A DNA stretch of 64,000 bases from Macrostomum hystrix (Eukaryota; Animalia; Platyhelminthes): assembly GCA_950097015.1 (NCBI GenBank), contig CATNEN010000014.1:930001-994000 (forward strand). The letters run 5' to 3'. Of the stretch, positions 2,560-50,864 are shown one piece after another. Position numbers and translations under genes: made by a program. The notes under the pieces are model-generated. The model was not told the origin of the DNA. It did no database searches and saw nothing but the letters and a program-made list of their open reading frames with translations. Position 1 is the first letter of the stretch; each line of letters begins with the position of its first letter.

Positions 2560-3263
2560 ATAGACTCTTCCGGTGCCACGCCGGAGCTTCCGCCACGGCG
2601 CTGTCCCTCTGCCTGCTCTCGCGTACGCCGACGACACCGCTCTGCTGTGCCGCAGTCCGGCTGCCGCCCAGAGAGCGCTCTCAAGACTGTGAGGAGAGCG
2701 CTCGAGTCGGACTGCAAATCAACGCGCGCAAGATGGAGGTCCTGCACGTCGGCACCGATACAGCACCAATCCTGACCCTGCCAGATGGGGAAGTCATCTC
2801 GGTCTGCCAAGACTTCTGGTACGTGGGCTCCCTCGTGCTGAGTCCTGACTCCATCATCGCTGACCGGAGGTCGCAGGCCTGGCGCGCGGGGCATCTCCTC
2901 AGGAAGGTTTTTAGCTCCGCTGCCAACGACAACCTGAAGATGCGCCTGTTTCGCGCTGCCGAAGAGCCAATTCTCCATTACGGACTGGAGGCAGTGCTGA
3001 TGACCGACTCGAGGTCTCGAGTGCTTGACGCTGCCTACCGATCGCTGCTGCGGCTCGCCCTCGGCATCCGCTACACAAAGCGGCTGCTGATGACGTTGAG
3101 ATGACGGACCTGCCTCTGCTCAACGTCGCCCTCCAGCGGCGCCGGCTGATGCTTGTCGGCCACTGCCTCCGCAGCTGCGGCAGAAGGGAGCAAAACCCGC
3201 TGGCGCTCACCCTACAGCTGACTGAGTGTCTCCGACGGGCCAAGGCCAGGCTTGACGCAGAAC
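2560..3263 (+). mobile_element. Non-LTR retrotransposon (RTE-like) reverse transcriptase fragment, frameshifted and truncated at both ends
   Basis: LPALAYADDTALL (YADD at 2624-2635), then after a frameshift ESARVGLQINARKMEV..DFWYVGS..LKMRLFRAAEEPILHYGLE..LQRRRLMLVGHCLR, matching RT palm/thumb motifs of RTE-clade LINEs. Confidence 0.85.
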
Positions 3264-3464
3264 CTGGGGAGTCGCCGAAGATGAAGACAAAGTCGGCGAC
3301 CCCAATCGGACACGGGAGTCCGCCATCCAGTGCGTCCACAGAGTCGTTGAGCAGACTGAGGTCAACTGCAACGAGGCGAGAAAAGCCGTCTTTGACAGAT
3401 TGTAAAAACAGTACGAAGATCGGGAAAAGAAAGTGCTCACTCATCTTGGAAATGTCAAGGACTT
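3264..3464 (+). pseudogene. About 200-bp degenerate fragment of the repeat module of the giant ORF
   Basis: TGGGGAGTCGCCGAAGA...GGAAATGTCAAGGACTT aligns with 11340-11540 at high identity; a CAA>TAA change puts a stop in the coding frame. Confidence 0.9.
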
Positions 3465-4307
3465 TCTCACAGGCAGTATTGATAAAATAAATTTTATGAA
3501 TCTCTTTTTTCAACAGAAAATGCTGATTTAGTTCCAGGAGTGATGAAGTATTTCAAAGTACTCGTAGTTTTCAGAGAAAAAATATAGACTGTTTATCGAG
3601 TGCATAGTAATTCATTAGTGAAGAATCAACCGTCTTTATTGTAAACGAGGCTTTCAACTATATCCAATTTTACCTATTGTGACGTTGTCACTTGTTGTAG
3701 GCGCCCCTGCGATATTACTCTGTGCGTTGATTTGCATGCTTAATTTACGAATTCCTAATTATGTACTAGCTTGGGCCGTTTTAACTCACCGTATAATGTC
3801 ATCCACTTCTGTTAATTCATATTATTAAGTCAAATGACTAGGGCACTACTGTTAGTAACCGTAAACGCATAACGCGCCATTCTAGCTATTTCCTACGCGT
3901 ATCTTAATGTATTTCCCCCCCGGCCAATGAGCGTGCGAGCTCTGTCTGCCTGGTTTACTTAAGCAAGGGCTTCAGGCCCGCTCGCGCCCCATTCTCTCCG
4001 CAGTCCTGTCCGCCAGTCTCTCCCCCCCGGTCATTGTCATTGTTCAGTCCGCCACACTCCACGCCTCGCTGTTCTGTTATTGTCAAACACTCACCATTAA
4101 CGAGCTCCTACGCCTTACATAACGCCCTGCTTGTCGACGTCCCAGTGCATCCAGAATAAAAGTGCTACCGCTACACCACAGACATTACTGACTCTAAGTT
4201 GCCATTAAATTACAATCGCCGCCGCTCTGACTTCGACTTCGTCTTCTTTTAAATCGTCACACTATGGTTAGCTTCTAAAAACGAGTGAAGGAGAAGTCAT
4301 ATCTACG

Positions 4308-4631: not shown

Positions 4632-4908
4632 GAAAAGAGATGAACTTTCTCCGTCAAACTTGAATGGGTTTGTTTCTTCGAGTTATATCGTGCAATGGGA
4701 GGAGTTTATTTATCCATGGAGTTCACTCATTAATGTACGCTCCGAAGCAAAGTGTCGAATGATACGGACGTTAAAATGTGTAAAGAGCTGTACAGTTGCT
4801 TGCCTCATTGTGAGGGTTTTTATACACCGGCAGGGATCATTGGACGGCTCTAGTTTCAATCTTTTTTTCTTTATTTTAATATCCACACAGCGTTATTGCA
4901 TAGTAAAA

Positions 4909-7796
4909 ATGCCAGACAAATGCTTGGTTTTCGGGTGCAAATCTGGCTTCGACTCAACACGACTCGTCCCAACGAATGGAATTTCCTTCCACCGATATCC
5001 AACTGAAGCCGATCCAGGGACTACTATATACTTAGTCACAGTATTTAGTAATCATCTGGCAAAGTGGCTGCGAAATCTGTTCAGAGAGTCAACATTTCAA
5101 CCCACCAAGCATTCCCGAGTCTGCTCTCTGCACTTCCTAGCCTCCGACTTTGTCACCGAATACAAGGGCAAAAGACCCAGGCCAGCGCTGCTCCTGCAAA
5201 GAAGCGACTTAAGGAAGATGCTGTTCCGACGCAATTCAGCACTACTATAATGCCAAGCTATTTCACCAAAGCGCAACCGGCTGTCCGATCTGACAAAGCT
5301 AGTTCAGTACGACGTCATGAAGCGAGTTTGGCGCAGCAGGAGCAACGGAGGCAAGATTTCTTTGCGAGTGAGGCCCTAATTTCGTGCATTCAACAAATAT
5401 GACTCAGTTTCGTTAAATAATCTAGTAGCCGGACTTGCCGCTGAGAATATGCCATTGGGATTTGCTATTTTCAAATCGGCGGGCTCCTTTAGCCTCATGT
5501 TGATGCTCCTGGTCCTCCTCCATCCGTTAAAAGCAGCATTGTGGTGAATGAAACACTGAACGTTGCCGTTTATCATGGCAATCGAATTGTGCCTCCAAAA
5601 AAGTACTGTCACATAATTCCAACCGAGACTTCAGCGCTCAGTTCGTCTTCGCAGCTGGCAAATTTGATCGCGTTTGTAAAGCACGCAGCCGAATCGGACA
5701 TTCCTGTGCTTAATCACCAGCAAGACGCACTCGGTAGTCTTAATTTACTTCAACAAGAAGACCACTTGACTGACCACTTGTCGTCAACCTGTCTCTCGTT
5801 CCTGATAGAGCAGCTGAAGTTGTTAAATGTGGAGAAACATGCACGAAGGTATTCACCTGAGCTGCTGGTTTTTCCTACATTTTGTTTGCAGCTAGTCCTG
5901 CTGCTTATGAACGGCTACTCGAGACGAATTCGTTGATTTTGCCGTCAGTCAAGACCTTGAGAAACGTTACAAAGAAGATTGGCTCTAGTGCAGGTCTCAG
6001 CAATTTCGAGTATCTAAAATTGCGCTACGATTCTATCCAAGCCTATGAGGCAACCGTCATTCTGCTGATCGATGAGATATATGTCAGCAAGCGGGTCGAG
6101 ATGAGCGGAGGAGAACTACATGGTTTAACGCAAACAGGAAACCTTGCACAGACCGCCCTCTGCTTTATGATAAAATCCGCAATGACCAAGTACCGTGACT
6201 TGGTCGGAATATTTCCAATGAACAATCTGAAGGCTTGCATGAGTGCTATTTGAGTATCATGCCTATGCTCCACAAGATTGGATTCAGTGTGGTTGCCATC
6301 AGCGTTGACAATGCGGCTGCGAACAGGCGCTTCTACACCCACTTTTTGTGCTCTGGCCGCCTCGATATCAGCGTGACGAATCCGTACAACGGACAAAGAC
6401 TGTTCCTCATATTCGACCCAACTCACAACATGAAGAACTAGTATAACAACTTCTTGACGCGAGGTGAGTTTGTGTGCCCGGGATTTCCTTCTATACTAGA
6501 CAAGCCAACCCGTGCTGCTTTCGCCGACGTCGAGAGAGTATATCGCTTGGAAGCCGACAAGCCGGTAAAATTGGCGCACAAGCTTATCAACGTCGTTCTA
6601 CATCCGTCAACCATCGAGAAGGTCAACGTTCAGCTGGCTCTCGCTCTCTTTCACGAATCCATCATCAATGCATTGCAACACTGTGGGTTTCGACAGACAG
6701 CCTCTGTTCTGACAGTATTTCTCAAGCTCTGGAATGTCGTAAATGTGCGCACGAACAATCGGAAAGCACAAAAGAGACAAAACGCGCGACACCGTCCGGT
6801 CTTCCTTGGACTGGAAGCTAGCATACCTGACGAACTTTGCGGACTTCCTGGAGATGTGGGATGGCCAAATGCAGACACCTTATCAAGTGGAAAGGCTCAC
6901 ACTTACCTTGCTGTGCGCCAGACCCGCCGAGCCATGGCCGAACTGGTTCAATACCTGCTAGACTGTTGTGAATTCTCCTTTGTTCTGATGGGAAAGATCA
7001 GAAATGCTGTCACCTCTGTCACCCTCTGACAGCATTGAGGCTCGATTTGGTTGGATTCGTCAGCTGAGTGGTGGCAATTATTACATCTCGATGCGCCAGC
7101 TGACAGAAAGAGACCGAAAAATCAAGGCCATCTGTTTGCTTAAGTACTTCGGACTTACAGTGAACGATATTGACAACGCACTGCAGCAGATGAGGCCCAG
7201 ACCCGGCTTACGTGAAGCTGGCGGAGGAGATTCACAGCGAGCTCCTTTTCAACATTGTTCCTGATAAAAACGATTTTGTTATCGTTTATTTCGTGTGCGG
7301 TTTCTGCGCCCGCTCTGTGATTGGGACGAAAAGGTGCGAATCATGCAGGGAGACCCTCGTCTGCGATGCTCCATCAGCAGAATTTTACTTTAAAGAGGAC
7401 GGAGCTCAGAACATCAAGGATGCTTCGGACTTTCTCGCTGAAGTCAATCGAGGAGATCTTCTCTGGCCACAGGAGCACTTGTTCCAGATTGGCATACTAT
7501 GCTGGCGTGCCTTCGTCGAGATTAAGAGCACACCAAGATTGAAGGACAGGTTTCTGTCAGCCTCGAACCAGAGAGCCGTGTTTCATCAAGTCATGGATTT
7601 TGTGCTCGCGGACAACCCGACGTTCCTGTTCGGCCGGACGCAATGCACGGATGGCCACGACTTGGTGCCGGAGATTACTAAGAGGTTTTTCAATTGTATG
7701 GCCAAAAACGTGGCTCGGCAGATTAACCAAGCTGATGCCACTGCAGTACTGCAAAGGAGGCTCCAGAAGCCGACCGGTTCCAGTAGCAGAATTTAA
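4909..7796 (+). mobile_element. Decayed P-element (THAP9-like) DNA transposase
   Basis: THAP C2CH finger (MPDKCLVFGC..FHRYP..KWLRNL..RVCSLHF..RLKEDAVPTQF), LPSVKTLR, catalytic LLIDEI and VDNAAAN, DPTHNMKN, GTP-binding insertion KLAHKL..HPSTIEKVNVQLA, and DSIEARFGWIRQLSGGN. Broken over at least 7 ORFs by stops and frameshifts. TIRs not found. Confidence 0.9.
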
Positions 7797-9702
7797 ATGG
7801 ACTTACTACTTAACTAAGGATACTATAGTTACTGTTTTACTGTTAGACTATTAATTCCTTTCACTTTCAGTGAAAGTAGTGAGTACTAGTTTTGATCATG
7901 ATTGCTCGTTCTTATAGGAATTTTAATGTTTTTGTGTTTGCTACGAAATTTATATTTTCTTTTGCTATTGCTATATTGCTATTTGTATTTGCTATTCAGC
8001 AATTGTTTCGAAAGCAATGTGTATGGATCATAATATTAATTTTCTATTTTCTCTTCAGTTTACTGTACCAGCATAGTTAATACTATATTTGATTCTACTT
8101 AGTGCACTTGCAAAATAAACTCTAGTTACAAGTACATTTGTATATTTCCATATTGTATATTTGTATACTTGTGTAGTACCTGTGGTAGCGTGGCACACAC
8201 AATTGGTAAAATGACCAAGACAGGACACTGGATTCCGAGAGGATTTTACCGGCCTCACACTCTGATGCTTCGTTGCAGTGGATGCAACCTGGTATTCAGG
8301 CTTAGATTGTACAAGCTTTCTCGTATCCCACAGTGTTAGCCTATAGTTAGCTAGTTTCTGTGACTCTGTCCTGAAACCGACGGTATACTAAGCTTCTAAA
8401 TGCAGTATACGGTCTGGTCTCTCAATATGTTGCAGAAGTCTCGTGAGATGAATAAGTTCTCAAAGGCTCGAACGATGCAAAACGCATGAAGACTGGAGAC
8501 AAGAAAGTGCCATCAATATAAAGAAATAGTGCTACCATGACACTAACACCATCTCAAGGATTCGTCGGACTGTGCTCTACTTATAGTAGGAGCATTTGAG
8601 CGTTGTTCTGCCAGTCTTCTTCCGAACTTAAGCGATTGCACCATGGTGTGCAATGTGACTCAGTGCGCAGACAGAGCTGGAAAGAGAGAGAGAGAGCGGA
8701 GGGGGTGGCGAGCGGAGGTGACAGTGCACGGGAAACACTAACTACCAACCCTAGCCCTCCCACAGACCTAGAACAGCCTGACTCACAGATTGCCTGGAGG
8801 CTGCTCAGCAGTCTACAGCACATCACTTGTATATTTCCATTTCGCAGTGGCTAGAAAAAGCCAGCCGTGTTGGGTATGGCAGTCAATGGAAGTTTCCATT
8901 CCAGATACTGTACTCAGAGTTCCTTGCTCAAACCCTGCGGGCTGCGGGCTCTGGAACTTCACATAGATAAGAGATCTGGAAGGCGGAGTGGGAGAAAGAA
9001 GCAGTGAAGGAAAAACTATTGTTTGAGGGAAAAGCGCTTCAGTTTGGCCAGCCGTGCATGCTATGAATTCCTGCCTATCCGAAGTGAGTTTCCATTCCAG
9101 ATAGTGTATACAGCTCCTTGGACAAGGCATTCAAGGCAAGGCGAGGCGACCGACAGGGTCCACTGTTTAAGAGCCGTCACTTTTTCACGGGCTTCCTTTA
9201 TGGAGACTAATATTTGCACCCAAAGCCCCTTCTTCCTTACTACTCAACCAGCATGCTGTGCCCGCTTGCAGGGGGTTGATGCTGATCTCAACTCAACCGT
9301 TATTAGGAACTCGTGAGCAGACTTACGGCTCCAAGACTTGAGCATTGTAGAAACGAAAAGCTTCATACTGGAGGTAAAATTTCTCTGTCCAGAAATCAAT
9401 AAACCCCCTCCCCACAATAGCCAGCTCATTCGCTGGCTCAGCGCAGCTCAGCCTTACACAGCTTGAATCACTTCACCCGCCCCACCGCCCCTCCCAAAGC
9501 CGCGCATTATAAAACCCAGACATCAAACATCAAAGCCACCTTACTGACTGACAGCGGTATGGAGAACATGAAGCTGTCGATTTTAAGAGCTTGCCAGGCC
9601 TGACGCAAAGTCCCAAGTGAATAGAATCGAGCTCGAGTCCACTTCTCGAGCTCTTTGTTCTCTTCGCCGGTCCGCCGCTCTCCGCTGGCGCAGACGAGCG
9701 CG

Positions 9703-12700
9703 ATGAGTCTCGAGCAAGCAGCGGGTGGCCAACAGATGGAGCTGCGACTCCACTTTCGCATTCAGGGATTGCAACATGACGAAGATGTCGGAAATGTAAT
9801 CGTCTCGTTGGCAGGTAAAAATTACCAGCTGCATGAGAGATTTATTCGCCAGAAAGCAGGATCGGGTAGATCGAGTAGATCGGGTAGATTACCCTATAAA
9901 GTTTTTGCCACTGGCAAATTTGAAGTCAATGATTTCGCTACTGACCTTGAATTGGTGGAGGATGCCAAGTCTGAAAAGTCAGAAACACTTGAAAAGCTGA
10001 AAACTATCTCTGAGGCCAGAGTGTCCAAAGAGGCACAGCTAGAGGATGAGTCCGACTTTCCCTGCATACAAGCAGAACTGACATCGGGTGGAGAGTTTCA
10101 GCTTCTTCCTGATAAGCAGCCACTGGAGTTCAGTCTGACCTTACGCGACGCCCACCTGCACTTCTCAAAGGAGTTTGTGGCAGAACTGCTCAAAATGAAG
10201 CACATTGTGGACAACATTGTCGAGTATCTTGTGTTGCTGCGCGTGGGAGAGACGGAAGTGTTCGTGTCAGCGCATCCAGTAACGCCTGTGAAGCTGGAGT
10301 TCCGAGCTGTCGCTCCCTCCGGAGTTGCGGCAAACGTGCTCGGAAACTGCGAGGAGCTGCGGGAGCGGACAGAGGAGAACAGAATGGTTGGTGACAGCGG
10401 CAGCGGTGCGCAGCTGAAAGCGGGGATCTACTTAAGGCTCGCACATCTGTTTGTATCGATCAGCTCGTCCAAAGGTGACCCTAAAGTAGATCCTAAAGGT
10501 GAACATGCGAGAATGTCAGGAAAATTTCGCACGCCCGATGGAGACCTCCTTAAAGTCCAGTTGAAGGTAAGAGACGCGGTAAACGAGCTCTGCTTTGACA
10601 GGCCGATTCAAACAGTACCACTTTCCTGCGAATCTCTTGAGCTGCAGATGCAGGAGATTGACGGATTCATAGTGGACTTCGAATATATAGGAACCAATGT
10701 GCGTGAAATCCTGAACTGGAAAGTTAAGTTCTTTGTAGACGACCTTGATGGCATATGTGCCGACATAACTGAAATCAGGCTGGAGGGTCTACCTGGAAGC
10801 AAATTTCTGCATAGTTGGAAAATATCTGATTCGGGATGGCAAACTGACGGAGAAATTGTGCTGTCTGCCAGTGCTGAGTACTGTGGCGACGAATGGCTGC
10901 TCAGGACCCTGGATGGTGAGGACTTTGATTTTGATTTGATTTTGAAGATGAAAGGGCAAGAGAGCAAGCTAAACGTACGTCTGTATCCTCGAATGAGCGC
11001 AGTCTGGCTGGACACTGCCTTCGAGGCTCGAGTGACTCTTTGGAAGAGCAGAGCTCGAGAATCTAAGTCATCTCTGCCGTCGGTGCCAGAAATCTGTTTC
11101 AGTTGTGACCTGCGTCGTCAGTGCGACTGTCCCTTCCTAACTCATCGGCGTGACTCGGTGCTGAGGCAGTTGGAAGAAGGTGTTATTAAAAAAAAACTGC
11201 AGGTGAATGGAAAGCCAATTGAGTTTCAAGCCGTCAAGGACACGTACGCCCAGCTGCTTGTGCCGCTCATCACAAAGGACGGCAGGTACGACGGCAGAAC
11301 AAAGGAGACCTCAGGAAATCCTTCAAAGTGGCACGACATCTGGGGAGTCGCCGAAGAAGAAGACAAAGTCGGCGACCCCAATCGGACCGGAGAGTCCGCC
11401 ATCGAGTGCATGCACAGAGTCGTTGAGCAGACTGAGCTCAACTGCAACGAGGCGAGGAAAGCCGTCTTTGACAGGTTGCAAAAACAGTACGAAGATCGGG
11501 AAAAGAAAGTCCGCACTCATCTTGGAAATGTCAAGGACTTGGAGTCGGTGACAGACGAGCAGCTACCGTCAGCAGAGCAGGATCTGAAGTTGCTCCTGCA
11601 GCACTCGGCTGCAATCGTTCGCGGTCGAATGGAGGCAGCTCTGGTGCTGGCTGAAGGAAGTGCAGAAAGTCACATGCAGGACTCCACTGCCAGGTTTGTG
11701 TTCCTCATGCGAGTGTGGTGCAGATTCAGGGAGCAGCATCGTGCTGGAGATGTGAAGAAAGTGTTCCGTGAGTCAATCTCAGAACCACAGCCGACATCGA
11801 GCTCTGCTCCAGATTCTTCTATTGACGTCTCCACTGACTTTTTATTCGCATCAGGCGTCTCGCATCGAGACGATATTTTCAGTCGCTTCAGCAGTGCTCT
11901 TAGCAGATTCGGACTTTGTAGGGCTAGCAGACCTGTCGGCTTCGTCGATGTCAAGGACACGTACGCTCAGCTGCTTGTGCCGCTCATCACAAAGTACGGC
12001 AGGTACCATGGCAGAACAAAGGAGACCTCAGGAAATCCTTCAAAGTGGCACGATATCTGGGGAGTCGCTGAAGAAGGAGACAAAGTCGGCGACCCCAATC
12101 GGACCGGAGAGTCCGCGATCCAGTGCGCGCTCAGGCTCAGCAAGCAGATGAACTGGAAGAATGCTCGAAAGGCAGTCTTCGACAGACTGATGAGGAAATA
12201 CGAGGCCCGAGAGGATGCTGTGCTGAAAGATCTCGGCTTCAACGGTAGCGAAATCAAGAACCTCCAAGTGGCAGCATATTGCCAGTTCCTGGAGTCGCTG
12301 GCAGATAGGGCAATGTCAAGTGAAGCAGAACTGCAGCTGCTGCGGCAGGCGGCCGCAATCGTTCGCGGTCGAATGGAGGCAGCTCTGGTGCTGCCTAAAA
12401 GAAGAGCAGAAAGCCACATGCAGGCCGCAACAGCTTGGTTTGTGCTCCTCATGCGAGTGTGGTGCAGATTTAGGGAGCGGTTTAAAGCTGGAGATGAAAA
12501 GTTTCAACTTAAGGAATCGATTAGAGAGGATTCAACATCACTGCAAGCTGCAGCTGATGTGAAAGTCCAAGGCTCCACCCAACTGCTGTCTCACTTTGAT
12601 TCCCCGTTTGTTGTTTCACGAAGAGACTCGGTGCTGAGGCAGTTCGAAGAAGGTGTTATTAAAAAAAAACTGCAGGTGAATGGAAAGCCAATTGAGTTTC

Positions 12701-15700
12701 AAGCCGTCAAGGACACGTACGCTCAGCTGCTTGTGCCGCTCATCAGAAAAGACGGCAGGTACGATGGCAGAACAAAGGAGACCTCAGGAAATCCTTCAAA
12801 GTGGCACGACATCTGGGGAGTCGCTGAAGAAGGAGACAAAGTCGGCGACCCCAATCGGACCGGAGAGTCCGCCATCGAGTGCATGCACAGAGTCGTTGAG
12901 CAGACTGAGCTCAACTGCAACGAGGCGAGGAAAGCCGTCTTTGACAGGTTGCAAAAACAGTACGAAGATCGGAAAAAGAAAGTCTTCACTCATCTTGGAA
13001 ATGTCAAGGACTTGGAGTCGGTGACAGACGAGCAGCTACCGTCAGCAGAGCTGGATCTGAAGTCGCTCCTGCAGCACTCGGCTGCCATCGTGCGCGGTCG
13101 AATGGAGGCAGCTCTGGTGCTGGCTGAAGGAAGTGCAGAAAGTCACATGCAGGCCTCCACTGCCTGGTTTGTGTTCCTCATGCGAGTGTGGTGCAGATTC
13201 AGCGAGCAGCATCGTGCTGGAGATGTGAAGAAAGTGTTCCGTGAGTCAATCTCAGAAACTCGTGACACGTCACTTCTACCCGCTTCTTCGCCGAAGGAAT
13301 TCGCGAAGAAGCTGCAGCTAGTCTTCTGCATCGACGAGAGTGTTCTCGGCGGCACAATTGAAGTAAACTTTGATGGTGATACTTTCACGCAGTCGAAAAT
13401 GAAGACAGTTGAAGGCGTTCGGCTGGAAGGATCAAAGTTTATGAGAAAAGAGGAAGTGTTGACATTCAAAGCGAGGCTAATACCCGACCCTGAGTTCACT
13501 GACTTTCAGTTGCTGCGAATTGAGCATGATGACGCAGAGGTGGACGAGTATAAGATTCGAATATTTATCACGAGTCGACAGCGTTCTAATGATACAAAAA
13601 TACACGTGCACGTTTTATATGCAGTGCCCCATACCGTGTACCCACGAGTCTGTGATTTCTATCTGGATACTCCACGCAGCCAGTGTCATCTCGGTGAGAT
13701 GACTCTCACCGAGACCTCACAACACCCAAGTACATGCCAGTCCTCTTCCTTTACTCTGCTGTTTAGAGTTAAACACTGTGAAGGCATGTCAGCGGTGAGA
13801 GTCACCAACTTGAGTGTCAGTGACCTTCAGCTAGACCTGAATGAGGGTGAGTGGTCGTCACGGACTCATGTTCCAATCGCTTGTTCTGACTCAGGTTCTG
13901 ACTCTGTATTGAACCTGCAGCCGTGTGTTCAGGCAGTCATTGACGGCAGACAATACGACTGCAGCCTCAGTCTGGGAGATGACAAACCAAAAGGAGCAGA
14001 TCTTGTCACTAATGGAGCTGAGCTGATTGCAAATGTGACTCAAATACCAACGGATGCCAATAAAAACGTAAAGGTGTGGAGCATCAGCAAGTGCCCGAAT
14101 GAGCTGGACGACTCAGACCTGCAGGTGCAGGTGCATCTCAGAGTGAAGGGAAAGCTAGAAAACCGATCAGCCAAACTCATTAGCAACGGCACGTCAGTAA
14201 CAGTCGATGAGTCCATGACAGTCGCTGCCCGAGTTCTGCCGGATAACACCGTCAGGGGACTCAAGGATTTGAAAGTTGAGATCGATGGCCAACAACTGCC
14301 AGTCGAGCAGATTTCGCCAGCGGAGACAGTGGCGAAGGCCGTGGTTCTTGTTGACGGTGACAGGGAGAAGCCGACGGCTCGCCTGTACGCAGTGAAGGAT
14401 GTGCCGATGCTGTTCGCGGCAGGCGAAGCTGGCATTCACGTCCTCAGCAACTGTCCTGAGATTGGAGACACAGTTTTGGAGTCTAACGAGCTGGTCAAGG
14501 ATGAAAACTCGGGTCAGTGGGTCAAGTGGCTCCGACTTGAGTTGGCGATGATCAACGGGGAGTTCCGACTTCTTGACGGACAGCCTGTGAAGGTGTGGAG
14601 ACGAAAAAGAGAAAAGAGACTGCATCGCTGGCCCCTGCAGCTGATGTGTCACAACGAAGGACAAGTCGGTTTTTGTGTCACCTTCAATGACGGGGAGCCT
14701 GTCGTCCACAGATCTGTTCGCGCCCTCCTACGAATTCGCGTTGGACACCAGGTGGGCATGACGTCACTCTGGGCTGAGGGTGACGGAGTGCCGGTCACTC
14801 CATTCACGCGTGAATGCGAGCCGTGTGCCATTCACAGCTTGATGAATGCAGAATGCAAGGCTTGTAGCAGCGAGTTCTGGGACGGCCTCGTGGAGCTGCC
14901 TGTGGCGATGCCGATGCCAACAGCGCTGAAAGCATTTGAGCTGAGGCTTCCCGCTGGTGGACAGGTGAAATTCAACCTCCGAGCGGTGAAGAGTGAGAAG
15001 CCAAAGTGCATGCCAGTCCAATATGCGCTGACAGTGCAGCAGCTACAGAGTCCCTTCGTCTTGTTTCACGCCGAAGTTGTTTACAAGAATCCGCCAAAAA
15101 AACGACAATCCAAAGAACTGCGCGCGGTAGGTAAACCAAATTCTGTGTACTCGAAACTAGAAAATGTTTTCTCCAAAAGATTTAAAACTGTATTTCCATT
15201 ACTGGTTCCGCAATTTGATTCGTACGGCGCATATACATCTGTCGAATCTGGCAAGTTTTATATCTGGGCATCGCACACTGATAAAGAAGTCCAAAGAGCG
15301 CTTGAGAAATTACAAGCTTGCCTTGAGAAGGCAAGAAATAATCAAGAAGCAAATAAAATAAAATGTGAGATAGACAAGCTCGAAGGCCTTAATCGATTCA
15401 TTCAGGCTGAGATCGAATTAGAGGGTCAAATAAAAGCGCCTACACACCGGGTTCATGCATATACTGCTAATAGCAGACACATAAGCTGCATACAATACTT
15501 TAACAGAAGAGTTCTGCCCCCATTCGACAATAACCCAGGAGGCGTTTTTAATATTGTCAGGAGACGCTTAAGAGTAATTTATCATCTCCATAGACAGCCG
15601 CTAGTAGAAAGTATTATGCAACAGGCTAATGTTGATGTTAATCTGGAAAATCAAGGCCACGACTATTTTACAACAGTGCGAAAACTGTGCCAGATATTTT

Positions 15701-15978
15701 GTCAAAGGAACGATCAAGCAGGACAGGAGCGCCGTAAAGCTGCGCTGGAGAAACTGCTCAAACATTCGGCCGCCATCGCCCGGGGTCGAGCTGAAGCCCT
15801 CCTCATGCCGCATCCTAATGGAGTGAAACCAGATGACCAACATTGTAAAGCAGCGGTCGCGTGGCTGACGCTGACAGTAAATATTCTGCAGAAACTAAGT
15901 AAGAAAAATGCGGCCGAATCAATGAAGGAAAGCAATTTTCCAGAACCCAACTTCTACCGGTGGCCGAAAAGAAACTGA
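9703..15978 (+). CDS. Giant intronless protein of about 2,090 aa, unknown function, with internal repeats and a CxxC-x9-CxxC motif
   Basis: 6.3-kb uninterrupted ORF of complex, non-satellite sequence. First ATG at 9703, preceded by a pyrimidine-rich ...GCGCAG at 9692-9693. Repeat copies differ by substitutions that keep the frame open. CEPCAIHSLMNAECKAC at 14815-14865. Confidence 0.85.
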   Translation: MSLEQAAGGQQMELRLHFRIQGLQHDEDVGNVIVSLAGKNYQLHERFIRQKAGSGRSSRSGRLPYKVFATGKFEVNDFATDLELVEDAKSEKSETLEKLKTISEARVSKEAQLEDESDFPCIQAELTSGGEFQLLPDKQPLEFSLTLRDAHLHFSKEFVAELLKMKHIVDNIVEYLVLLRVGETEVFVSAHPVTPVKLEFRAVAPSGVAANVLGNCEELRERTEENRMVGDSGSGAQLKAGIYLRLAHLFVSISSSKGDPKVDPKGEHARMSGKFRTPDGDLLKVQLKVRDAVNELCFDRPIQTVPLSCESLELQMQEIDGFIVDFEYIGTNVREILNWKVKFFVDDLDGICADITEIRLEGLPGSKFLHSWKISDSGWQTDGEIVLSASAEYCGDEWLLRTLDGEDFDFDLILKMKGQESKLNVRLYPRMSAVWLDTAFEARVTLWKSRARESKSSLPSVPEICFSCDLRRQCDCPFLTHRRDSVLRQLEEGVIKKKLQVNGKPIEFQAVKDTYAQLLVPLITKDGRYDGRTKETSGNPSKWHDIWGVAEEEDKVGDPNRTGESAIECMHRVVEQTELNCNEARKAVFDRLQKQYEDREKKVRTHLGNVKDLESVTDEQLPSAEQDLKLLLQHSAAIVRGRMEAALVLAEGSAESHMQDSTARFVFLMRVWCRFREQHRAGDVKKVFRESISEPQPTSSSAPDSSIDVSTDFLFASGVSHRDDIFSRFSSALSRFGLCRASRPVGFVDVKDTYAQLLVPLITKYGRYHGRTKETSGNPSKWHDIWGVAEEGDKVGDPNRTGESAIQCALRLSKQMNWKNARKAVFDRLMRKYEAREDAVLKDLGFNGSEIKNLQVAAYCQFLESLADRAMSSEAELQLLRQAAAIVRGRMEAALVLPKRRAESHMQAATAWFVLLMRVWCRFRERFKAGDEKFQLKESIREDSTSLQAAADVKVQGSTQLLSHFDSPFVVSRRDSVLRQFEEGVIKKKLQVNGKPIEFQAVKDTYAQLLVPLIRKDGRYDGRTKETSGNPSKWHDIWGVAEEGDKVGDPNRTGESAIECMHRVVEQTELNCNEARKAVFDRLQKQYEDRKKKVFTHLGNVKDLESVTDEQLPSAELDLKSLLQHSAAIVRGRMEAALVLAEGSAESHMQASTAWFVFLMRVWCRFSEQHRAGDVKKVFRESISETRDTSLLPASSPKEFAKKLQLVFCIDESVLGGTIEVNFDGDTFTQSKMKTVEGVRLEGSKFMRKEEVLTFKARLIPDPEFTDFQLLRIEHDDAEVDEYKIRIFITSRQRSNDTKIHVHVLYAVPHTVYPRVCDFYLDTPRSQCHLGEMTLTETSQHPSTCQSSSFTLLFRVKHCEGMSAVRVTNLSVSDLQLDLNEGEWSSRTHVPIACSDSGSDSVLNLQPCVQAVIDGRQYDCSLSLGDDKPKGADLVTNGAELIANVTQIPTDANKNVKVWSISKCPNELDDSDLQVQVHLRVKGKLENRSAKLISNGTSVTVDESMTVAARVLPDNTVRGLKDLKVEIDGQQLPVEQISPAETVAKAVVLVDGDREKPTARLYAVKDVPMLFAAGEAGIHVLSNCPEIGDTVLESNELVKDENSGQWVKWLRLELAMINGEFRLLDGQPVKVWRRKREKRLHRWPLQLMCHNEGQVGFCVTFNDGEPVVHRSVRALLRIRVGHQVGMTSLWAEGDGVPVTPFTRECEPCAIHSLMNAECKACSSEFWDGLVELPVAMPMPTALKAFELRLPAGGQVKFNLRAVKSEKPKCMPVQYALTVQQLQSPFVLFHAEVVYKNPPKKRQSKELRAVGKPNSVYSKLENVFSKRFKTVFPLLVPQFDSYGAYTSVESGKFYIWASHTDKEVQRALEKLQACLEKARNNQEANKIKCEIDKLEGLNRFIQAEIELEGQIKAPTHRVHAYTANSRHISCIQYFNRRVLPPFDNNPGGVFNIVRRRLRVIYHLHRQPLVESIMQQANVDVNLENQGHDYFTTVRKLCQIFCQRNDQAGQERRKAALEKLLKHSAAIARGRAEALLMPHPNGVKPDDQHCKAAVAWLTLTVNILQKLSKKNAAESMKESNFPEPNFYRWPKRN
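11149..13260 (+). repeat. Three tandem intragenic copies (A, B, A') of a module of about 170-200 aa
   Basis: VKDTYAQLLVPLI starts at 11233, 11950 and 12706. A and A' are 1473 bp apart and near-identical, including the RDSVLRQ.EEGVIKKK lead-in; B is more diverged in its 3' half. Confidence 0.95.
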
Positions 15979-16123
15979 CGTATCAAATTGCCTGACTATA
16001 GTAACTTTCTCTGCGCATGCACGATCTAGATCTAGATGCGTGCAGCCTCTCAATGCTAATGAATTGTGCTTAATCGAGTTATCGTGTTATCGATAATAAC
16101 TCGTCTTTTCGTGCTTTACCACC

Positions 16124-18790
16124 TGTGCGTATCTTTTCATTGTTATCCCAATTGCTTTACTCTATCAATATCTAAGCGTATCTTTTCATTGTTATCCCAA
16201 TTGCTTTATTCTATCAATATCTAAGCGTATCTTTTCATTGTTATCCCAATTGCTTTACTCTATCAATATCTAAGCGTATCTTTTCATTGTTATCCCAATG
16301 GCTTTATTCTATCAATATCTAAGCGTATCTTTTCATTGTTATCCCAATGGCTTTACTCTATCAATATCTAAGCGTATCTTTTCATTGTTATCCCAATGGC
16401 TTTATTCTATCAATATCTAAGCGTATCTTTTCATTGTTATCCCAATTGCTTTACTCTATCAATATCTAAGCGTATCTTTTCATTGTTATCCCAATTGCTT
16501 TACTCTATCAATATCTAAGCGTATCTTTTCATTGTTATCCCAATGGCTTTATTCTATCAATATCTAAGCGTATCTTTTCATTGTTATCCCAATGGCTTTA
16601 TTCTATCAATATCTAAGCGTATCTTTCCATTGTTATCCCAATGGCTTTATTCTATCAATATCTAAGCGTATCTTTTCATTGTTATCCCAATGGCTTTATT
16701 CTATCAATATCTAAGCGTATCTTTTCATTGTTATCCCAATTGCTTTACTCTATCAATATCTAAGCGTATCTTTTCATTGTTATCCCAATGGCTTTACTCT
16801 ATCAATATCTAAGCGTATCTTTTCATTGTTATCCCAATGGCTTTATTCTATCAATATCTAAGCGTATCTTTTCATTGTTATCCCAATGGCTTTATTCTAT
16901 CAATATCTAAGCGTATCTTTTCATTGTTATCCCAATGGCTTTATTCTATCAATATCTAAGCGTATCTTTTCATTGTTATCCCAATGGCTTTACTCTATCA
17001 ATATCTAAGCGTATCTTTTCATTGTTATCCCAATGGCTTTATTCTATCAATATCTAAGCGTATCTTTTCATTGTTATCCCAATGGCTTTACTCTATCAAT
17101 ATCTAAGCGTATCTTTTCATTGTTATCCCAATGGCTTTACTCTATCAATATCTAAGCGTATCTTTTCATTGTTATCCCAATGGCTTTATTCTATCAATAT
17201 CTAAGCGTATCTTTTCATTGTTATCCCAATGGCTTTACTCTATCAATATCTAAGCGTATCTTTTCATTGTTATCCCAATGGCTTTATTCTATCAATATCT
17301 AAGCGTATCTTTTCATTGTTATCCCAATGGCTTTACTCTATCAATATCTAAGCGTATCTTTTCATTGTTATCCCAATGGCTTTATTCTATCAATATCTAA
17401 GCGTATCTTTTCATTGTTATCCCAATGGCTTTATTCTATCAATATCTAAGCGTATCTTTTCATTGTTATCCCAATGGCTTTACTCTATCAATATCTAAGC
17501 GTATCTTTTCATTGTTATCCCAATTGCTTTACTCTATCAATATCTAAGCGTATCTTTTCATTGTTATCCCAATGGCTTTACTCTATCAATATCTAAGCGT
17601 ATCTTTTCATTGTTATCCCAATTGCTTTACTCTATCAATATCTAAGCGTATCTTTTCATTGTTATCCCAATGGCTTTATTCTATCAATATCTAAGCGTAT
17701 CTTTCCATTGTTATCCCAATGGCTTTATTCTATCAATATCTAAGCGTATCTTTTCATTGTTATCCCAATGGCTTTACTCTATCAATATCTAAGCGTATCT
17801 TTTCATTGTTATCCCAATGGCTTTATTCTATCAATATCTAAGCGTATCTTTTCATTGTTATCCCAATGGCTTTATTCTATCAATATCTAAGCGTATCTTT
17901 TCATTGTTATCCCAATGGCTTTATTCTATCAATATCTAAGCGTATCTTTTCATTGTTATCCCAATTGCTTTACTCTATCAATATCTAAGCGTATCTTTTC
18001 ATTGTTATCCCAATGGCTTTATTCTATCAATATCTAAGCGTATCTTTTCATTGTTATCCCAATGGCTTTACTCTATCAATATCTAAGCGTATCTTTTCAT
18101 TGTTATCCCAATGGCTTTATTCTATCAATATCTAAGCGTATCTTTTCATTGTTATCCCAATTGCTTTACTCTATCAATATCTAAGCGTATCTTTTCATTG
18201 TTATCCCAATTGCTTTACTCTATCAATATCTAAGCGTATCTTTTCATTGTTATCCCAATGGCTTTATTCTATCAATATCTAAGCGTATCTTTTCATTGTT
18301 ATCCCAATGGCTTTATTCTATCAATATCTAAGCGTATCTTTTCATTGTTATCCCAATGGCTTTACTCTATCAATATCTAAGCGTATCTTTTCATTGTTAT
18401 CCCAATTGCTTTATTCTATCAATATCTAAGCGTATCTTTTCATTGTTATCCCAATTGCTTTATTCTATCAATATCTAAGCGTATCTTTTCATTGTTATCC
18501 CAATTGCTTTATTCTATCAATATCTAAGCGTATCTTTCCATTGTTATCCCAATGGCTTTATTCTATCAATATCTAAGCGTATCTTTTCATTGTTATCCCA
18601 ATGGCTTTATTCTATCAATATCTAAGCGTATCTTTCCATTGTTATCCCAATGGCTTTATTCTATCAATATCTAAGCGTATCTTTCCATTGTTATCCCAAT
18701 GGCTTTATTCTATCAATGTCTAAGCGTATCTTTTCATTGTTATCTCATTATTTATTCTAGCAAATCTGTGCGTATCTTTTCAATGCCGCT
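16124..18790. repeat. 49-bp tandem array, about 54 copies
   Basis: Unit GCGTATCTTTTCATTGTTATCCCAAT[T/G]GCTTTA[C/T]TCTATCAATATCTAA; period confirmed at 16861 and 16910. Confidence 0.97.
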
Positions 18791-22017: not shown

Positions 22018-22430
22018 GTCACTCCATTCACGTGTGAATGTGAGCCTATGCCATTCACACATTCGTGAATGCAGAATGCAAGGCTTGTAGCAGCGAGTTC
22101 TGGGACGACCTCGTGGATAGCCCTGACTCGGAAACCGTCTGTCTGTGACGGCAGCGGTGTGGAGCGTGACCCCGCTGATCAGAGCTGCAGGCGGAGTTCG
22201 AACGATTGCGGCATGCGAGCCAGCTCATGATTTTTGCACCTGAGCATTTCCCCTTTGTCTAATTCGCGTTTCTTAGCTGTGTCGAGATGCCTGTGGCGAT
22301 GCCGATGGCACGGCTTTGAAAGCGTTTGAGCAGATGCTTCTGCGGGTGGACAGGTGCAGAAATTCAACCTCCGAGCGTGAGAATAAGTGCATGCCGGTGC
22401 ATAGGCCAATTCGTTGTTGACCAGTGCCTG
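22018..22430 (+). pseudogene. Second degenerate fragment of the giant ORF (zinc-motif region), split by an insertion
   Basis: 22018-22117 matches about 14794-14893 and 22288-22430 matches about 14896-15035, with indels. The intervening segment contains the reverse complement of 20812-20941. Confidence 0.85.
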
Positions 22431-24398: not shown

Positions 24399-26872
24399 AT
24401 GTTCGCTCAGGTGCATCAGCAGCAGCAGCAGCAGCCGGCATCCCGGCTGCCACAAATCGGCGACTCCGCGCTCAGTTCGCGTGGCAGCGGCGGCGGCAGT
24501 GGCGGAGGTCCTCGGATCCAACAACTCTACGGAAATCACGACGGTCCGGCCTTTGGAGCCCGAGCCCGTGCAGGGCAGCAGCAGCAGCAGCAGCTGGTTA
24601 GCCAGTTAGGACAACGGGAGGAGTCTGCCGTGGCCCTCCCAACTGTATCCGGCGGCAGCGGCAGGCAGCAGGCGGCCTCGACTGCGGGTGCGGCGAGTTT
24701 GGTCGACTCGGCCAAGAGCGCAGCCGTTGGCGGCGGTGGGCGTGGCGCCCAGGCGATCAGCCCGGAGGCGGCGATGAAGCTGTACGGGCACAAGCTTAGC
24801 GACTTTGAGCAGCAGGAAATCTTCAAGTAGGCGACAGGTTTCTTGGAACATCTTTGAGCGAAGGAAAAAATTCGCTTTCAATATTCCTTTTTGTCCGCCT
24901 TCTTTTCTCCTCTGTCTTTCTGTCTGTCAAGTCCACAAATCCACAGTTCACCTTCAACAGATCCATCGCCCTCCGCAGCTACCCGCAGGTTTTCTTTGTC
25001 GGTCCATCGGCCAAGAAGCGACCGGCCGTGGCCGGTGGCGCCAACAACTCCGGCTTCGACGACGAGCACGGCTGCTACATGCACACGGCGCACGACCACA
25101 TTGCCTATCGATACGAAGTGCTCAGGGTTATCGGTGAGTACGCATACTCATACTCATACTCACACTTCCGAGTTCGTTTTCATTTTGTGCATCTGAAAAA
25201 TATGAATTAACCATCGTGGTTTGCACAGAGCAATGTTAGCTGTCCTTGTCACCAGGGTCTTCGTCAAGAATCGCTGAATATCTCGACGATGCTGAAGTCG
25301 AATCGATTTGAAAGTTCGGGAAGGGGCGGAAAACTTGAATCCATTTGGTGGACTTTCACAAAAGTCGGTCATTCGGTTTAGGAGCTATCGTGAAGTAGGC
25401 AGTGTGTATTCGAAATACCCCGCAGGGAAAAATAACTTCGTCTTTCTACTGCTAATGAGTGCTCTCGTAGTAGTGCGCATTTCACATCAGATTGCTGTTT
25501 GCGGTGGTTTTAGAGGGTTTCCTGACAAGATTATCTAAAAATAGCAACATGGCTTCCCCTCTCTCTCTCTGTTTGGCCAATCAAAATTGGAATGCTGAAG
25601 TCCAGCTTTTGTATCTGTGGCAATCCATTGTACATCCAATGGCATACTGAATTAGCATTGTCTATGGTAACAGCCCGAGTCACCCACAACTGCCTCGCGC
25701 AGGCAAGGGCAGCTTCGGCCAGGTTGTGAAGTGCCACGACCACAAGACCAACGCGCAGGTGGCTCTGAAGATGGTGCGCAATGAGAAGCGCTTCACGCGA
25801 CAGGCCGGCGAGGAGATCCGCATCCTTGAGCAGCTGCGGCGTCAGGACCGGAACAACACCAACAACATTGTGCACATTGTGGAGCACTTCACCTTCAGGA
25901 ATCACGTCTGCATCACATTCGAGCTGCTGTCAATCAACCTGTACGAGCTGATCAAGAAGAACAAATTTCAGGGCTTCTCGCTGCAGCTGGTGCGCAAGTT
26001 CGCCCTGTCGATCCTGCAGTGCCTGGACTTGCTCAGCAGGAATAAGGCAAGCTGCCGGCTGATGGGTTGAGTGAGTCAGCGGGTGATTCTGTTCTCATGC
26101 CTTGGCTCACCCACAACTGCAGATAATCCACTGCGATCTGAAGCCCGAGAACATCCTGCTAAAGTGCCAGGGCCGCAGCGGCCTGAAGGTGATCGACTTC
26201 GGCAGCTCCTGCTACGAGCACCAGCGAATCTACACGTACATTCAGTCCCGGTTCTACCGAGCGCCCGAGGTCATCATGGGCGCCAGGTACGGCCTGCCCA
26301 TCGACATGTGGAGCTTCGGCTGCATCCTGGCTGAGCTCTACACAGGTGAGTTGAGCAGCGTACTCATCCACTGCCTCTGGGCTCTTCCCTGCTCAGCCCG
26401 CTTCTCCTCTCTTCCCCTCCCAGGTGTTCCGATCTTTCCAGGCGAGGATGAGTCGGACCAGCTGGCCTGCATCATGGAGATCTTCGGCCAGCCGCCCGCC
26501 CGCCTCCTGGAAGCCTCCAAGCGCTCAAAGCTCTTCTTCTCCTCGCGCGGCCTGCCCCGCTACTGTCACTGCGACACCGATGGCGACGGTAGCGTCCAGC
26601 TGAAGGGCGGGCGCTCAAAACGCGGCAAATTCCGCGGCCCGCCGGGCAGCCGCGATTTAGCCGCCGGCGCCCTCAATGGCTGCCCAGACGCCGCCTTCAT
26701 CGATTTCCTGGCGCGCTGTTTCGCCTGGCAGCCGGAAGAGCGGCTGACACCGCGAGAGGCCGTGCGGCACGACTGGCTCAAGCGCCGCCTGTTGCCGCAG
26801 CCGGCGTCTGGAAAGTCGACTGCGGCCACCTCTGCAGCTGTCGCCGCTGCTGTGGCCACTGCAGGAAGATGA
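24399..26872 (+). CDS. DYRK2: Dual-specificity tyrosine-phosphorylation-regulated kinase, class 2 (DYRK2/3-like)
   Basis: Exons 24399-24826, 24979-25133, 25703-26046, 26123-26345, 26424-26872. DH box and [69 protein letters not shown]. The start codon is tentative. Confidence 0.92.
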
Positions 26873-29924: not shown

Positions 29925-32567
29925 AAAACTGCTCACTGTGCTCAAAACATGCAGCCAACCTTGGCATGCCCGCTGGCTGTGAACTCACGATTCTGCCTCA
30001 GCAGCACCAGCGTGCAGCGCAACAGCAACGCCAGCACGAACCTGCGGGCTCTGGACGAAAGCGAGGAGCTGGTGAGTCAATTCTGGAGTCGTTGCTGCAA
30101 AGCAATAATGCAAATGAAAATGCTATCAGCACTGATGCGCTGTGAGTACAGTGAGCACAGCTTCATCCTGTGAGCATAGCTGCATTCTGGGAACATAACT
30201 GCATCCTGTGAGTGCAGTGAGTAGGCTGCGTCCTGTGAGTGCAGTGAGTAGGCTGCATCCTGTGAGTGCAGTGAGTAGGCTGCGTCCTGTGAGTGCAGTG
30301 AGTAGGCTGCATCCTGTGAGTGCAGTGAGTAGGCTGCGTCCTGTGAGTGCAGTGAGTAGGCTGCGTCCTGTGAGTGCAGTGAGTAGGCTGCGTCCTGTGA
30401 GTGCAGTGAGTAGGCTGCATCCTGTGAGTGCAGTGAGTAGGCTGCGTCCTGTGAGTGCAGTGAGTAGGCTGCGTCCTGTGAGTTCAGTGAGTAGGCTGCG
30501 TCCTGTGAGTGCAGTGAGTAGGCTGCGTCCTGTGAGTTCAGTGAGTAGGCTGCGTCCTGTGAGTTCAGTGAGTAGGCTGCGTCCTGTGAGTGCAGTGAGT
30601 AGGCTGCATCCTGTGAGTTCAGTGAGTAGGCTGCGTCCTGTGAGTGCAGTGAGTAGGCTGCATCCTGTGAGTGCAGTGAGTAGGCTGCGTCCTGTGAGTG
30701 CAGTGAGTAGGCTGCGTCCTGTGAGTTCAGTGAGTAGGCTGCGTCCTGTGAGTGCAGTGAGTAGGCTGCGTCCTGTGAGTTCAGTGAGTAGGCTGCGTCC
30801 TGTGAGTTCAGTGAGTAGGCTGCGTCCTGTGAGTGCAGTGAGTAGGCTGCATCCTGTGAGTTCAGTGAGTAGGCTGCGTCCTGTGAGTGCAGTGAGTAGG
30901 CTGCATCCTGTGAGTGCAGTGAGTAGGCTGCGTCCTGTGAGTGCAGTGAGTAGGCTGCATCCTGTGAGTACAGTGAGTAGGCTGCGTCCTGTGAGTGCAG
31001 TGAGTAGGCTGCGTCCTGTGAGTGCAGTGAGTAGGCTGCGTCCTGTGAGTACAGTGAGTAGGCTGCATCCTGTGAGTGCAGTGAGCACAGCTTCATCCTG
31101 TGAGCACAGCTTAATCCTGTGAGCACAGCTTCATCCAGTGAGCACAGCTTCATCCAGTGAGCACAGCTTCATCCTGTGAGCACAGCTTCATCCAGTGAGC
31201 ACAGCTGTATCCTGTGAGCACAGCTGTATCCTGTGAGCACAGCTTCATCCTGTGAGCACAGCTTAATCCTGTGAGCACAGCTTCATCCAGTGAGCACAGC
31301 TTCATCCAGTGAGCACAGCTTCATCCTGTGAGCACAGCTTCATCCAGTGAGCACAGCTGTATCCTGTGAGCACAGCTGTATCCTGTGAGCACAGCTGTAT
31401 CCTGTGAGCACAGCTGTATCCTGTGAGCACAGCTTCATCCTGTGAGCACAGCTTAATCCTGTGAGCACAGCTTCATCCAGTGAGCACAGCTTCATCCAGT
31501 GAGCACAGCTTCATCCTGTGAGCACAGCTCCATCCAGTGAGCACAGCTGTATCCTGTGAGCACAGCTGTATCCTGTGAGCACAGCTGTATCCTGTGAGCA
31601 CAGCTGTATCCTGTGAGCACAGCTGTATCCTGTGAGTACTGAGAGCGCAATTAAATCATGTAATTTGGAGCATTTCTGTGTCTTCCTCCCCCACAGCCGA
31701 CCAGCGAAGGTGACGGGTGTAGCGTCCACCTGGACAACTCAAATCAAGCCCAATTCAAAGAAAAAGACAGCTGCTTCGCTGATCAATACGCTAATTTTTC
31801 AGGTATTTAGGTGCATTTTTGTTGCTTTAGAGTTGAGAGATTCGCACTAATACCCTATAAACACCGTTTCCGCAGCCGTCGCATCGGGTAGCAGATCAAA
31901 GCAAGGCCGCAGTTTGCTGCAGAAGAATCGGCAGCAACATCTCCGGCAGCGCCCCGATTACTTGATCCCGCTGGCTCTCAGTAGCAACCAGTCCAACTTT
32001 TTCCAGCGGTTTCTGGGAAATAACTGCAAAAATGTTCACGTGAGAGCAGTTCTCAATGCGGTCACGCTATGACCAATCAGGGAACCCCTACAGTATTGTT
32101 GGTCTTTTTGACCAATCAGGGAATCCCTATAGTATTTTTGGTACCCTTGACCAATCAGAGAACTCCAAAGCTGATTGGCTTAGCGCTTTAATACAATGAA
32201 AGAATTGCAAATTTCTGTTGTTGCCATGGCAAAGTTATAAGCTTGCGATGCATCATTACGATGAAAAGTTGAACTCCGCCTGCAGAATGTCAGCGAACAG
32301 CCGCAACCACCTCAGAAACCGGCTGCCAACTCAGTCAACAATGTCCCCGCCAGAGGCGGAGGCGAGTTGATGCCGAACTCGGGCGTGCCCTATTGGAATG
32401 TGTACGAGTACCATGACTTCCGCCAGGTCGATAGCTGCTATTCGCACATGTTCGATCCGCAAGTTGAGCCTTGTTGGCACAGGGAGACCATCATCCAGGA
32501 CTGCTACAACCGACTCCGCGTCAGCACTTCCAAATTCCGACCGCCGCCCCCGTACCACCTTCGGTGA
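29925..32567 (+). CDS. Uncharacterised multi-exon protein (at least about 230 aa; 5' end uncertain)
   Basis: Four GT-AG exons, 29925-30071, 31697-31802, 31876-32039 and 32286-32567, join in phase (0/1/0) without stops. Ends YWNVYEYHDFRQVDSCYSHMFDPQVEPCWHRETIIQDCYNRLRVSTSKFRPPPPYHLR*. Confidence 0.6.
30140..31635. repeat. Compound intronic array: 27-bp unit (about 33 copies, 30200-31085) followed by a related 19-bp unit (about 29 copies, 31080-31635)
   Basis: Units TCCTGTGAGTGCAGTGAGTAGGCTGCG and GTGAGCACAGCTTCATCCT; periods seen as 9-aa and 19-aa repeats in the ORF track. Confidence 0.95.
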
Positions 32568-50385: not shown

Positions 50386-50864
50386 CAGAAATCAACTGAT
50401 GGCTACTCAAAGACTTTGGAAAAGATGACGTGTTGGGAAAAGTCAGTTTAATTTATTATCTAGTGGGTTAGTTATTCGCTTATTTGCGTTGACAATTTTT
50501 CAACCTCGCGTTTCCCGCCGCGGCTGCCTCTTGTTAATTTTTTTACACTGCACAGGTGCAAATCACATTTGTACATAACGCCCAGCGCTACACAAAATAA
50601 CACCTGCCTGCACCTGAGAGCCTGCCCCAGTCATGACCGCTTTCAGGACCCGTCATCTCTCCTACCTCAAGCAGCTGTTGTTATATTTATATACATAACA
50701 TATATACAAATACATCTTATCTGGACTCGATTTTACCAATACAAACTGTGTTGTTTTTTACACCGAGCTGTGAGCTCGAATGTTTCTACTGCGCACCGAC
50801 ACGGCAAGCCAGGTCTGTCCCGCATCTCCGTGATGTCCGTCAGCTGCGGTTTACTGATCTCCCT

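Follow-up and report, generated by a model that had tools for sequence, protein, structure and literature searches.

The locus considered here raises the question of whether a very long, intronless reading frame that lies among transposon remains and satellites is an intruder or one of the host's own genes. It belongs to a stretch of 64,000 nucleotides from the flatworm Macrostomum hystrix (the window; assembly GCA_950097015.1, contig CATNEN010000014.1, positions 930,001 to 994,000 of the forward strand), and positions given below are counted from the first letter of this window. A preliminary description had reported a giant, intact and intronless gene for a protein of 2,090 amino acids, and had proposed that it represents an immune or conflict effector, mobile-element cargo, or a horizontally acquired or retroposed gene. 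The locus is instead an ordinary nuclear host gene of Macrostomum, the largest member of a small family. We are highly confident of the intactness of the gene, of its conservation in a second species, and of the architecture and family membership set out below.

The open frame spans 9655-15978 on the forward strand and has its first ATG at 9703. Translation of 9703-15978 yields 2,091 amino acids followed by a stop, in one exon and with zero internal stops, so that the single frame stands as first described while the length of the protein is corrected by one residue. The ATG at 9703 is a plausible start, as the alignment with the orthologue from Macrostomum lignano begins at residue 10. A TATA-like box (TATAAAA, 9508-9514, forward strand), read directly in the sequence some 190 bp 5′ of the ATG, represents a candidate core promoter. 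Homology searches of the 220-Mb, 42-contig M. hystrix assembly indicate that the gene is single-copy. The giant protein, as it is called hereafter, is probably soluble and intracellular: its mean Kyte-Doolittle hydropathy does not exceed 1.23 in any 19-residue window, with no membrane span, and its N-terminus is not signal-like, in agreement with the earlier report that neither a signal peptide nor a transmembrane segment is present. A Pfam scan of the protein brought no family close to its threshold, the best match (E 0.014) scoring 15.9 bits versus a cut-off of 26.7, and a PDB sequence search with it gave no match.

Two full-length counterparts were recovered in M. lignano by a word-index search, P0001 (BOX15_Mlig011933g1, 2,111 amino acids) and P0002 (BOX15_Mlig018956g1, 1,848 amino acids). 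Both are uncharacterised hypothetical proteins that can be regarded as true orthologues, sharing 48-49% identity with the giant over the whole length and the same domain order. They carry three and two copies, respectively, of a helical module that is present in three main copies (M1-M3) in the giant. Identity per 100-residue window ranges from about 29 to 71% of aligned residues (raw counts 27-71) and is lowest at residues 1201-1300, and the first 100 residues of the giant hold an insertion of about 45 residues (~47-92) that is absent from the orthologues. The existence of full-length counterparts in M. lignano indicates that the gene is old in the genus and under constraint, and the maintenance of an open 6.3-kb frame at such divergence implies selection. 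The ratio of non-synonymous to synonymous substitution rates (dN/dS, Nei-Gojobori method) between the modules is 0.39-0.46. As a separate observation, the stretch that matches residues ~1762-1860 of the giant, where it is single, is doubled in tandem in both P0001 (residues 1565-1862) and P0002 (residues 1311-1602).

A repeated helical module and its family

The layout of the giant was obtained by chunk-wise self-BLAST comparisons and iterated hidden Markov model (HMM) searches; all of its features lie on the forward strand. Residues 1-482 are mostly non-helical and comprise an N-terminal region (residues 1-160, 9703-10182), a diverged CBM20-like domain referred to as the N copy (residues ~163-285, 10189-10557), and a further region at residues 290-482 (10570-11148). 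These are followed by the helical modules M1 (residues 484-696, 11152-11790), M2 (residues 723-944, 11869-12534) and M3 (residues 975-1187, 12625-13263). A second non-helical region, residues 1195-1860, begins with a segment at residues 1195-1533 (13285-14301), continues with the C copy of the CBM20-like domain (residues ~1534-1646, 14302-14640), and also contains the motif CxxC-x9-CxxC (residues 1705-1721, 14815-14865). The C-terminal part is made up of a possible short coiled coil with a weak match to DUF2205 (E 0.014; residues 1861-1905, 15283-15417) and a diverged fourth helical module (residues 1914-2082, 15442-15948), in which mainly the C-terminal helices are kept (LLKHSAAIARGRAEALL). 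The repeated module noted in the preliminary description by the motifs LLVP, HDIWG and AAIVRGRMEAAL is thereby found in three copies plus a diverged fourth. On internal comparison, residues 163-285 are homologous to residues 1534-1631, and the giant looks like two tandem units, each with a beta region followed by one or more helical modules. In unit 1, a triplicated module would come after a beta region that includes a diverged CBM20-like domain; in unit 2, a beta region with a second such domain would lead, via the short coiled coil, to a single diverged module. For the remaining ~1,100 residues (1-160, 290-482, 1195-1533 and 1647-1860), the two orthologues alone provide relatives. The CxxC-x9-CxxC motif had been pointed out previously and is indeed present in the giant; its first cysteine is a serine in both P0001 and P0002, which makes a conserved four-cysteine zinc site unlikely, and a zinc-binding knuckle or ribbon was rejected on this ground.

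The module is about 215 residues long and displays the signatures YAQxLVPxI, HDIWG and AAIVRGRxEAxLV. Its invariant residues are I67, L113, R120, L152, A157, R161, R163 and E165, the last three of which make up the R-G-R-x-E signature. A profile built from 12 modules, termed A1, defines what we call the Macrostomum helical-module family. The giant contains four matches to A1 (E 2.9e-77 to 2.3e-52) together with the R-G-R-x-E helix and the D-I-W segment, module 4 being devoid of the HDIWG part. Searches of the M. hystrix genome with the protein and A1 revealed 16 module matches in approximately 7-9 genes. Besides the giant on chromosome 14, with four modules in 2,091 amino acids, these include two frames of 977 and 1,278 amino acids on chromosome 1 (L013/L014, C1:10462000-10486000), with two and three modules; adjacent frames of 554 and 1,272 amino acids on chromosome 2 (L015, C2:4698000-4707999), with one module each; a protein of 561 amino acids with one module on chromosome 41 (L017, C41:2550000-2559999); three weaker matches on chromosome 8; and a broken fragment with a partial module at 3264-3464 of the window. 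About 10 M. lignano proteins also carry the module, and in every family member the modules are C-terminal.

Some of these paralogues are arranged as same-strand neighbours, with the 977- and 1,278-residue frames lying ~13 kb apart on chromosome 1 and the 554- and 1,272-residue frames ~1 kb apart on chromosome 2. Directly 5′ of the 561-residue paralogue, at 886-4653 of L017, open frames of 700-1,150 amino acids occur in several phases of both strands, in what is probably a long coding-looking repeat; one of them gives a marginal match to DUF6743 (28.9 bits).

The taxonomic range of the family appears remarkably narrow. A HMMER search with A1 of 1.84 billion representative proteins returned only 12 cluster representatives, none of them a prokaryotic or viral protein. 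All nine with a traceable source are from M. lignano: eight carry the name of this species, and the ninth, the MetaClust entry P0008, is presumably likewise from it, as its accession series matches a known entry of the species. Unnamed Logan and ENA assemblies are the source of the remaining three (P0011-P0013); these share 46% identity with one another and 21-30% with the Macrostomum members over the module, contain the motif ARIVRGRLE.NLVS, and in the case of P0011 include a weak CBM_20 match (22.1 bits). Scanning of viral and JGI metagenome contigs with the module pattern yielded no relatives, and a PDB sequence search with the module profile found no match. Even at E ≤ 5, the 12 modules have no recurrent Pfam match, which argues for an undescribed domain family. 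The family is almost confined to Macrostomum; both the unrecognised nature of the module and its membership of a multi-copy family, as originally proposed, are borne out, no described family fitting this lineage-restricted domain.

The modules of the giant are not equally related to one another. M1 and M3 share 97.3% DNA identity over 633 bp; of their codon differences, 6 are synonymous and 10 non-synonymous. M2 is only ~59% identical in protein overall and forms a mosaic, in which two patches are 93-95% identical in DNA to M1/M3 and the rest ~55%. In a maximum-likelihood tree of 26 modules, M1-M3 of the giant and the M. lignano modules constitute one clade (support 100/99), which splits by species into the three M. 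hystrix modules (86/58) and five from M. lignano (99/98). On the other hand, the chromosome-1 paralogues and P0006, their counterpart in M. lignano, have modules that group by position (M1 with M1, M2 with M2). Species-wise grouping and near-identical DNA patches suggest gene conversion inside the giant, and it is most simply proposed that M1-M3 are kept alike within each species by this process; independent triplication in each lineage may represent an alternative. Gene conversion would thus keep tandem modules alike within one gene while the same modules of its paralogues have diverged freely.

An AlphaFold2 model of module 1, obtained with A1 as input, reached a pLDDT (predicted local distance difference test) of 85 and a predicted TM-score of 0.87. 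In the model, a helix is followed by a small hairpin, an extended conserved segment (P42, Y50, D66-I67-W68) and a bundle of long helices. Structural comparison of this model revealed no specific relative. Clusters of the dynamin GED/stalk type, obtained from the ESM Atlas with the module, were dismissed as helical-bundle noise due to their low recognition (1344) and the few features they share with it.

Diverged CBM20-like domains

The second component of the family is linked to CBM20, a starch/glycogen-binding domain that Pfam detects in relatives of the giant and not in the giant itself. With the CBM_20 profile (PF00686, gathering cut-off 23.3 bits), no match was found at E ≤ 1 in the giant or at E ≤ 0.1 in the orthologues. 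In contrast, matches to CBM_20 that clearly exceed the cut-off, each lying on the N-terminal side of the module, occur in several relatives: in the 1,272-residue paralogue of chromosome 2 (74.9 bits, four stretches), in the 561-residue paralogue of chromosome 41 (40.9 bits), and in P0003, P0004 and P0007 of M. lignano, with up to six Pfam-significant CBM20 domains in one family protein. The claim that the giant holds no known domain consequently survives as far as Pfam matches are concerned, and has to be qualified with regard to its relatives and to the two diverged domains discussed here. The four CBM20 repeats of the chromosome-2 protein are nearly identical and have a period of ~127 residues. 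A genome-wide scan with PF00686 found only the chromosome-41 paralogue.

Several lines of evidence connect the two stretches of the giant to these domains. A jackhmmer search started from the chromosome-41 CBM20 reaches residues 190-252 and 1569-1646. These sites are also matched, in the giant as well as in both orthologues, by an HMM from whose training set these three proteins were left out (residues 207-232 in the N copy). When 30 overlapping windows of the three-orthologue alignment were compared with the paralogue CBM20 profile by hhalign, scores were obtained only at residues ~197-220 (P 4e-5) and ~1578-1623 (P 9e-6), along with their overlapping neighbours (P 3e-4 and 4e-5), all other windows having P > 0.04; the scan supports remote homology to CBM20, with a modest hhalign probability of 70-83% (70% for the N copy). 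Furthermore, for a model of residues 1540-1700, CBM20 and CBM48 domains made up nearly all of the top ten structural matches. An ESM Atlas search with the CBM20-like stretch gave no match.

A number of points weigh against this assignment and what it would imply. Each line is weak when considered singly: the independently trained HMM scores only 5.7-10 bits, with the best of 200 shuffled sequences at 7.2, and the alignment behind the model of residues 1540-1700 included true CBM20 domains. In addition, the chromosome-2 repeats retain the tryptophan of the ELGxW motif, whereas neither copy of the giant does. A tryptophan is still present within QWVKW of the C copy; the N copy lacks one at both positions. 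As the tryptophan pair of CBM20 site 1 presumably provides the aromatic glucan-binding residues, loss of the ELGxW tryptophan from both copies makes present-day glucan binding doubtful. With all lines combined, we nevertheless consider it likely that both stretches derive from CBM20.

Origin of the gene and its surroundings

The notion that the gene is transposon cargo, was acquired horizontally or by recent retroposition, or encodes an effector of immunity or conflict draws on real features of the neighbourhood, such as the transposase remains and dispersed repeats upstream, the small gene fragments scattered nearby, and a multi-copy family with a variable number of modules. It also draws on the absence of introns in a gene whose neighbours were described as intron-rich, a contrast for which only single exon-like reading frames of those neighbours were checked here. 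Taken as a whole it is improbable, and in its cargo, horizontal-transfer and recent-retrogene versions it is largely refuted. Full-length orthologues in M. lignano tell against it, and no prokaryotic or viral protein figured among the 12 profile matches. Transposon cargo was rejected on account of the single-copy status of the gene, of a distance of 2-5 kb from the transposase remnants, and of the lack of inverted repeats within the upstream flank (7500-9800) or the downstream one (15900-16200), each scanned singly for repeats within itself. As regards a processed retrogene, neither an A-run nor a poly(A) tract is found in the 150 bp 3′ of the stop, a TATA-like box lies 5′ of the gene, and neither a second copy nor a parent gene exists in the genome. 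On chromosomes 1, 2 and 41, the paralogues are all long single frames, which identifies the intronless state as an old trait of the family and not a sign of recent retroposition. An immune or conflict function finds no echo in PADLOC or PHROGs, neither of which gave a meaningful match to the giant or its paralogues, nor in viral folds, viral contigs or metagenome contigs, and a between-module dN/dS below 0.5 does not favour it either. At the opposite extreme, the idea that the frame is dead or was never expressed, and is intact by chance, deserves hardly any credence, since the preservation of a stop-free 6.3 kb in two species only 48% identical in protein is incompatible with neutral decay.

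The surroundings of the gene are nonetheless rich in repeats, as had been noticed before. A satellite of 49-bp units (54 copies, 97% matches, 2.66 kb) occupies 16127-18782, starting ~150 bp past the stop, and corresponds to the 2.7-kb array reported earlier. The window harbours ~20 further minisatellite arrays, with units of 12-110 bp and lengths of 0.2-2.7 kb, many of which yield long spurious reading frames in several frames (e.g., 30077-31153, 49369-50451 and 60737-61996). Upstream, in the region 4660-7796 of the forward strand, pieces of reading frame encode a THAP domain (4660-5250) and, weakly, a TNP-like GTP-binding insertion domain (6454-7029). They look like the broken remains of a P-element/THAP9-type transposase and do not bracket the gene. 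Together with dispersed repeats between 2573 and 4265, they account for the transposon-rich tract of the preliminary description. The two dispersed repeat families concerned, at 2573-3247 and 3675-4265, have tens of genomic copies with 71-92% identity.

The "two broken relatives" of the gene claimed nearby turned out to be short scraps, not gene copies. One is the module fragment at 3264-3464 (201 bp, forward strand), which corresponds to residues ~547-613 with 93.5% nucleotide identity and is interrupted by TGA and TAA stops; its position between the two dispersed repeat families suggests that it was moved or trapped by repeat activity. The other, at 22018-22401 (forward strand), consists of two pieces of ~100 and 120 bp matching 14794-14894 (91%) and 14890-15020 (78%), with a local repeat in between. 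Neighbouring host genes are represented by exon-like reading frames for a protein kinase (26102-26872, forward strand, E 2e-28) and a PP2C phosphatase (57201-57764, reverse strand, E 3e-28).

A putative glycogen scaffold and its comparison with known systems

Intracellular CBM20 proteins such as STBD1, laforin and GPCPD1 tether a working domain to glycogen. The layout of the family, in which one or more CBM20-type beta-sandwich domains would precede one to three helical modules, invites an analogy with these proteins, based on domain association only, whereby the family would set its helical module at glycogen particles. At glycogen (alpha-glucan) particles, the giant might accordingly play the part of a multivalent scaffold or adaptor, with the CBM20-derived domains providing, or having formerly provided, the glucan anchor, and the helical modules serving as working or partner-binding units. 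That the giant binds glucan, that it serves as a scaffold and where it resides in the cell are all inferred. Taken together, the reading that unites host gene, family, architecture and glycogen scaffold is somewhat favoured, and the scaffold mechanism on its own is put forward tentatively, as a proposal that falls a little short of being probable. A bolder version, in which the ~215-residue module, with its R-G-R-x-E helix packed against the D-I-W segment, would be a novel domain that binds or catalytically acts upon glycogen or a partner bound to it, is quite unlikely; if true, it would amount to a genus-specific invention in glycogen handling, of which the giant would be the four-headed version.

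The foremost competitor of the scaffold proposal is a lineage-specific structural or reproductive protein unconnected with glycogen, in which the CBM20-derived domains would be mere beta-sandwich spacers and the modules would build a structure specific to Macrostomum, e.g., in the sperm or the copulatory apparatus. The missing ELGxW tryptophan in both CBM20-like copies speaks for such a role, as do the absence of any CBM20 signal from the chromosome-1 paralogues and P0006, the variation in module number between P0001 and P0002, and the confinement of the family to a genus in which genes related to reproduction reportedly evolve fast (PMC7336406). CBM20 domains that are significant by Pfam persist in several members of the family, up to the six in one protein mentioned above, from which it can be argued that glucan binding is still used in the family; on balance, we regard the structural or reproductive role as rather unlikely. 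The M. lignano gene identifiers of the family gave no match in those portions of literature full texts and supplements that were available to a search for expression. Within flatworms, the family resembles the Mlig-sperm1 family, which is likewise flatworm-restricted and multi-copy and has a Pfam-negative domain, built there from a single beta sheet and multiple helices (PMC5816591). The Mlig-sperm1 family reaches planarians (PMC5816591), whereas the module profile search gave no named match outside Macrostomum. Membership of the Mlig-sperm1 family was rejected, as none of 10 M. lignano identifiers occurs in the supplements of that work, which include the table of the family (PMC5816591); the two are set apart by identifiers and by description.

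The interest of the locus lies in a domain family that is absent from Pfam, has no PDB relative and is repeatedly coupled to CBM20. Macrostomum is a flatworm model with RNA interference and transgenesis, in which the function of such an orphan domain can be tested. Fusion of CBM20 to a partner domain is in itself a known arrangement, and neither a new class of system nor a long-standing question is involved. Compared with STBD1, laforin and GPCPD1, the partner here is an undescribed helical bundle, where those have a membrane anchor, a phosphatase or a phosphodiesterase. The giant also departs from those proteins in that its CBM20-like domains fall below the Pfam threshold and are deprived of the ELGxW tryptophan, as well as in its four modules and in its size, 5-10 times theirs. 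Plant scaffolds of the PTST/FLO6 type combine a coiled coil with CBM48, their helical parts recruiting partners to glucan granules. They bear no sequence or family relation to the giant, employ CBM48 in place of CBM20 and have their parts in the reversed order. What they would have in common with the giant, as a purely functional analogy, is the joining of a glucan-binding module to helical interaction parts.

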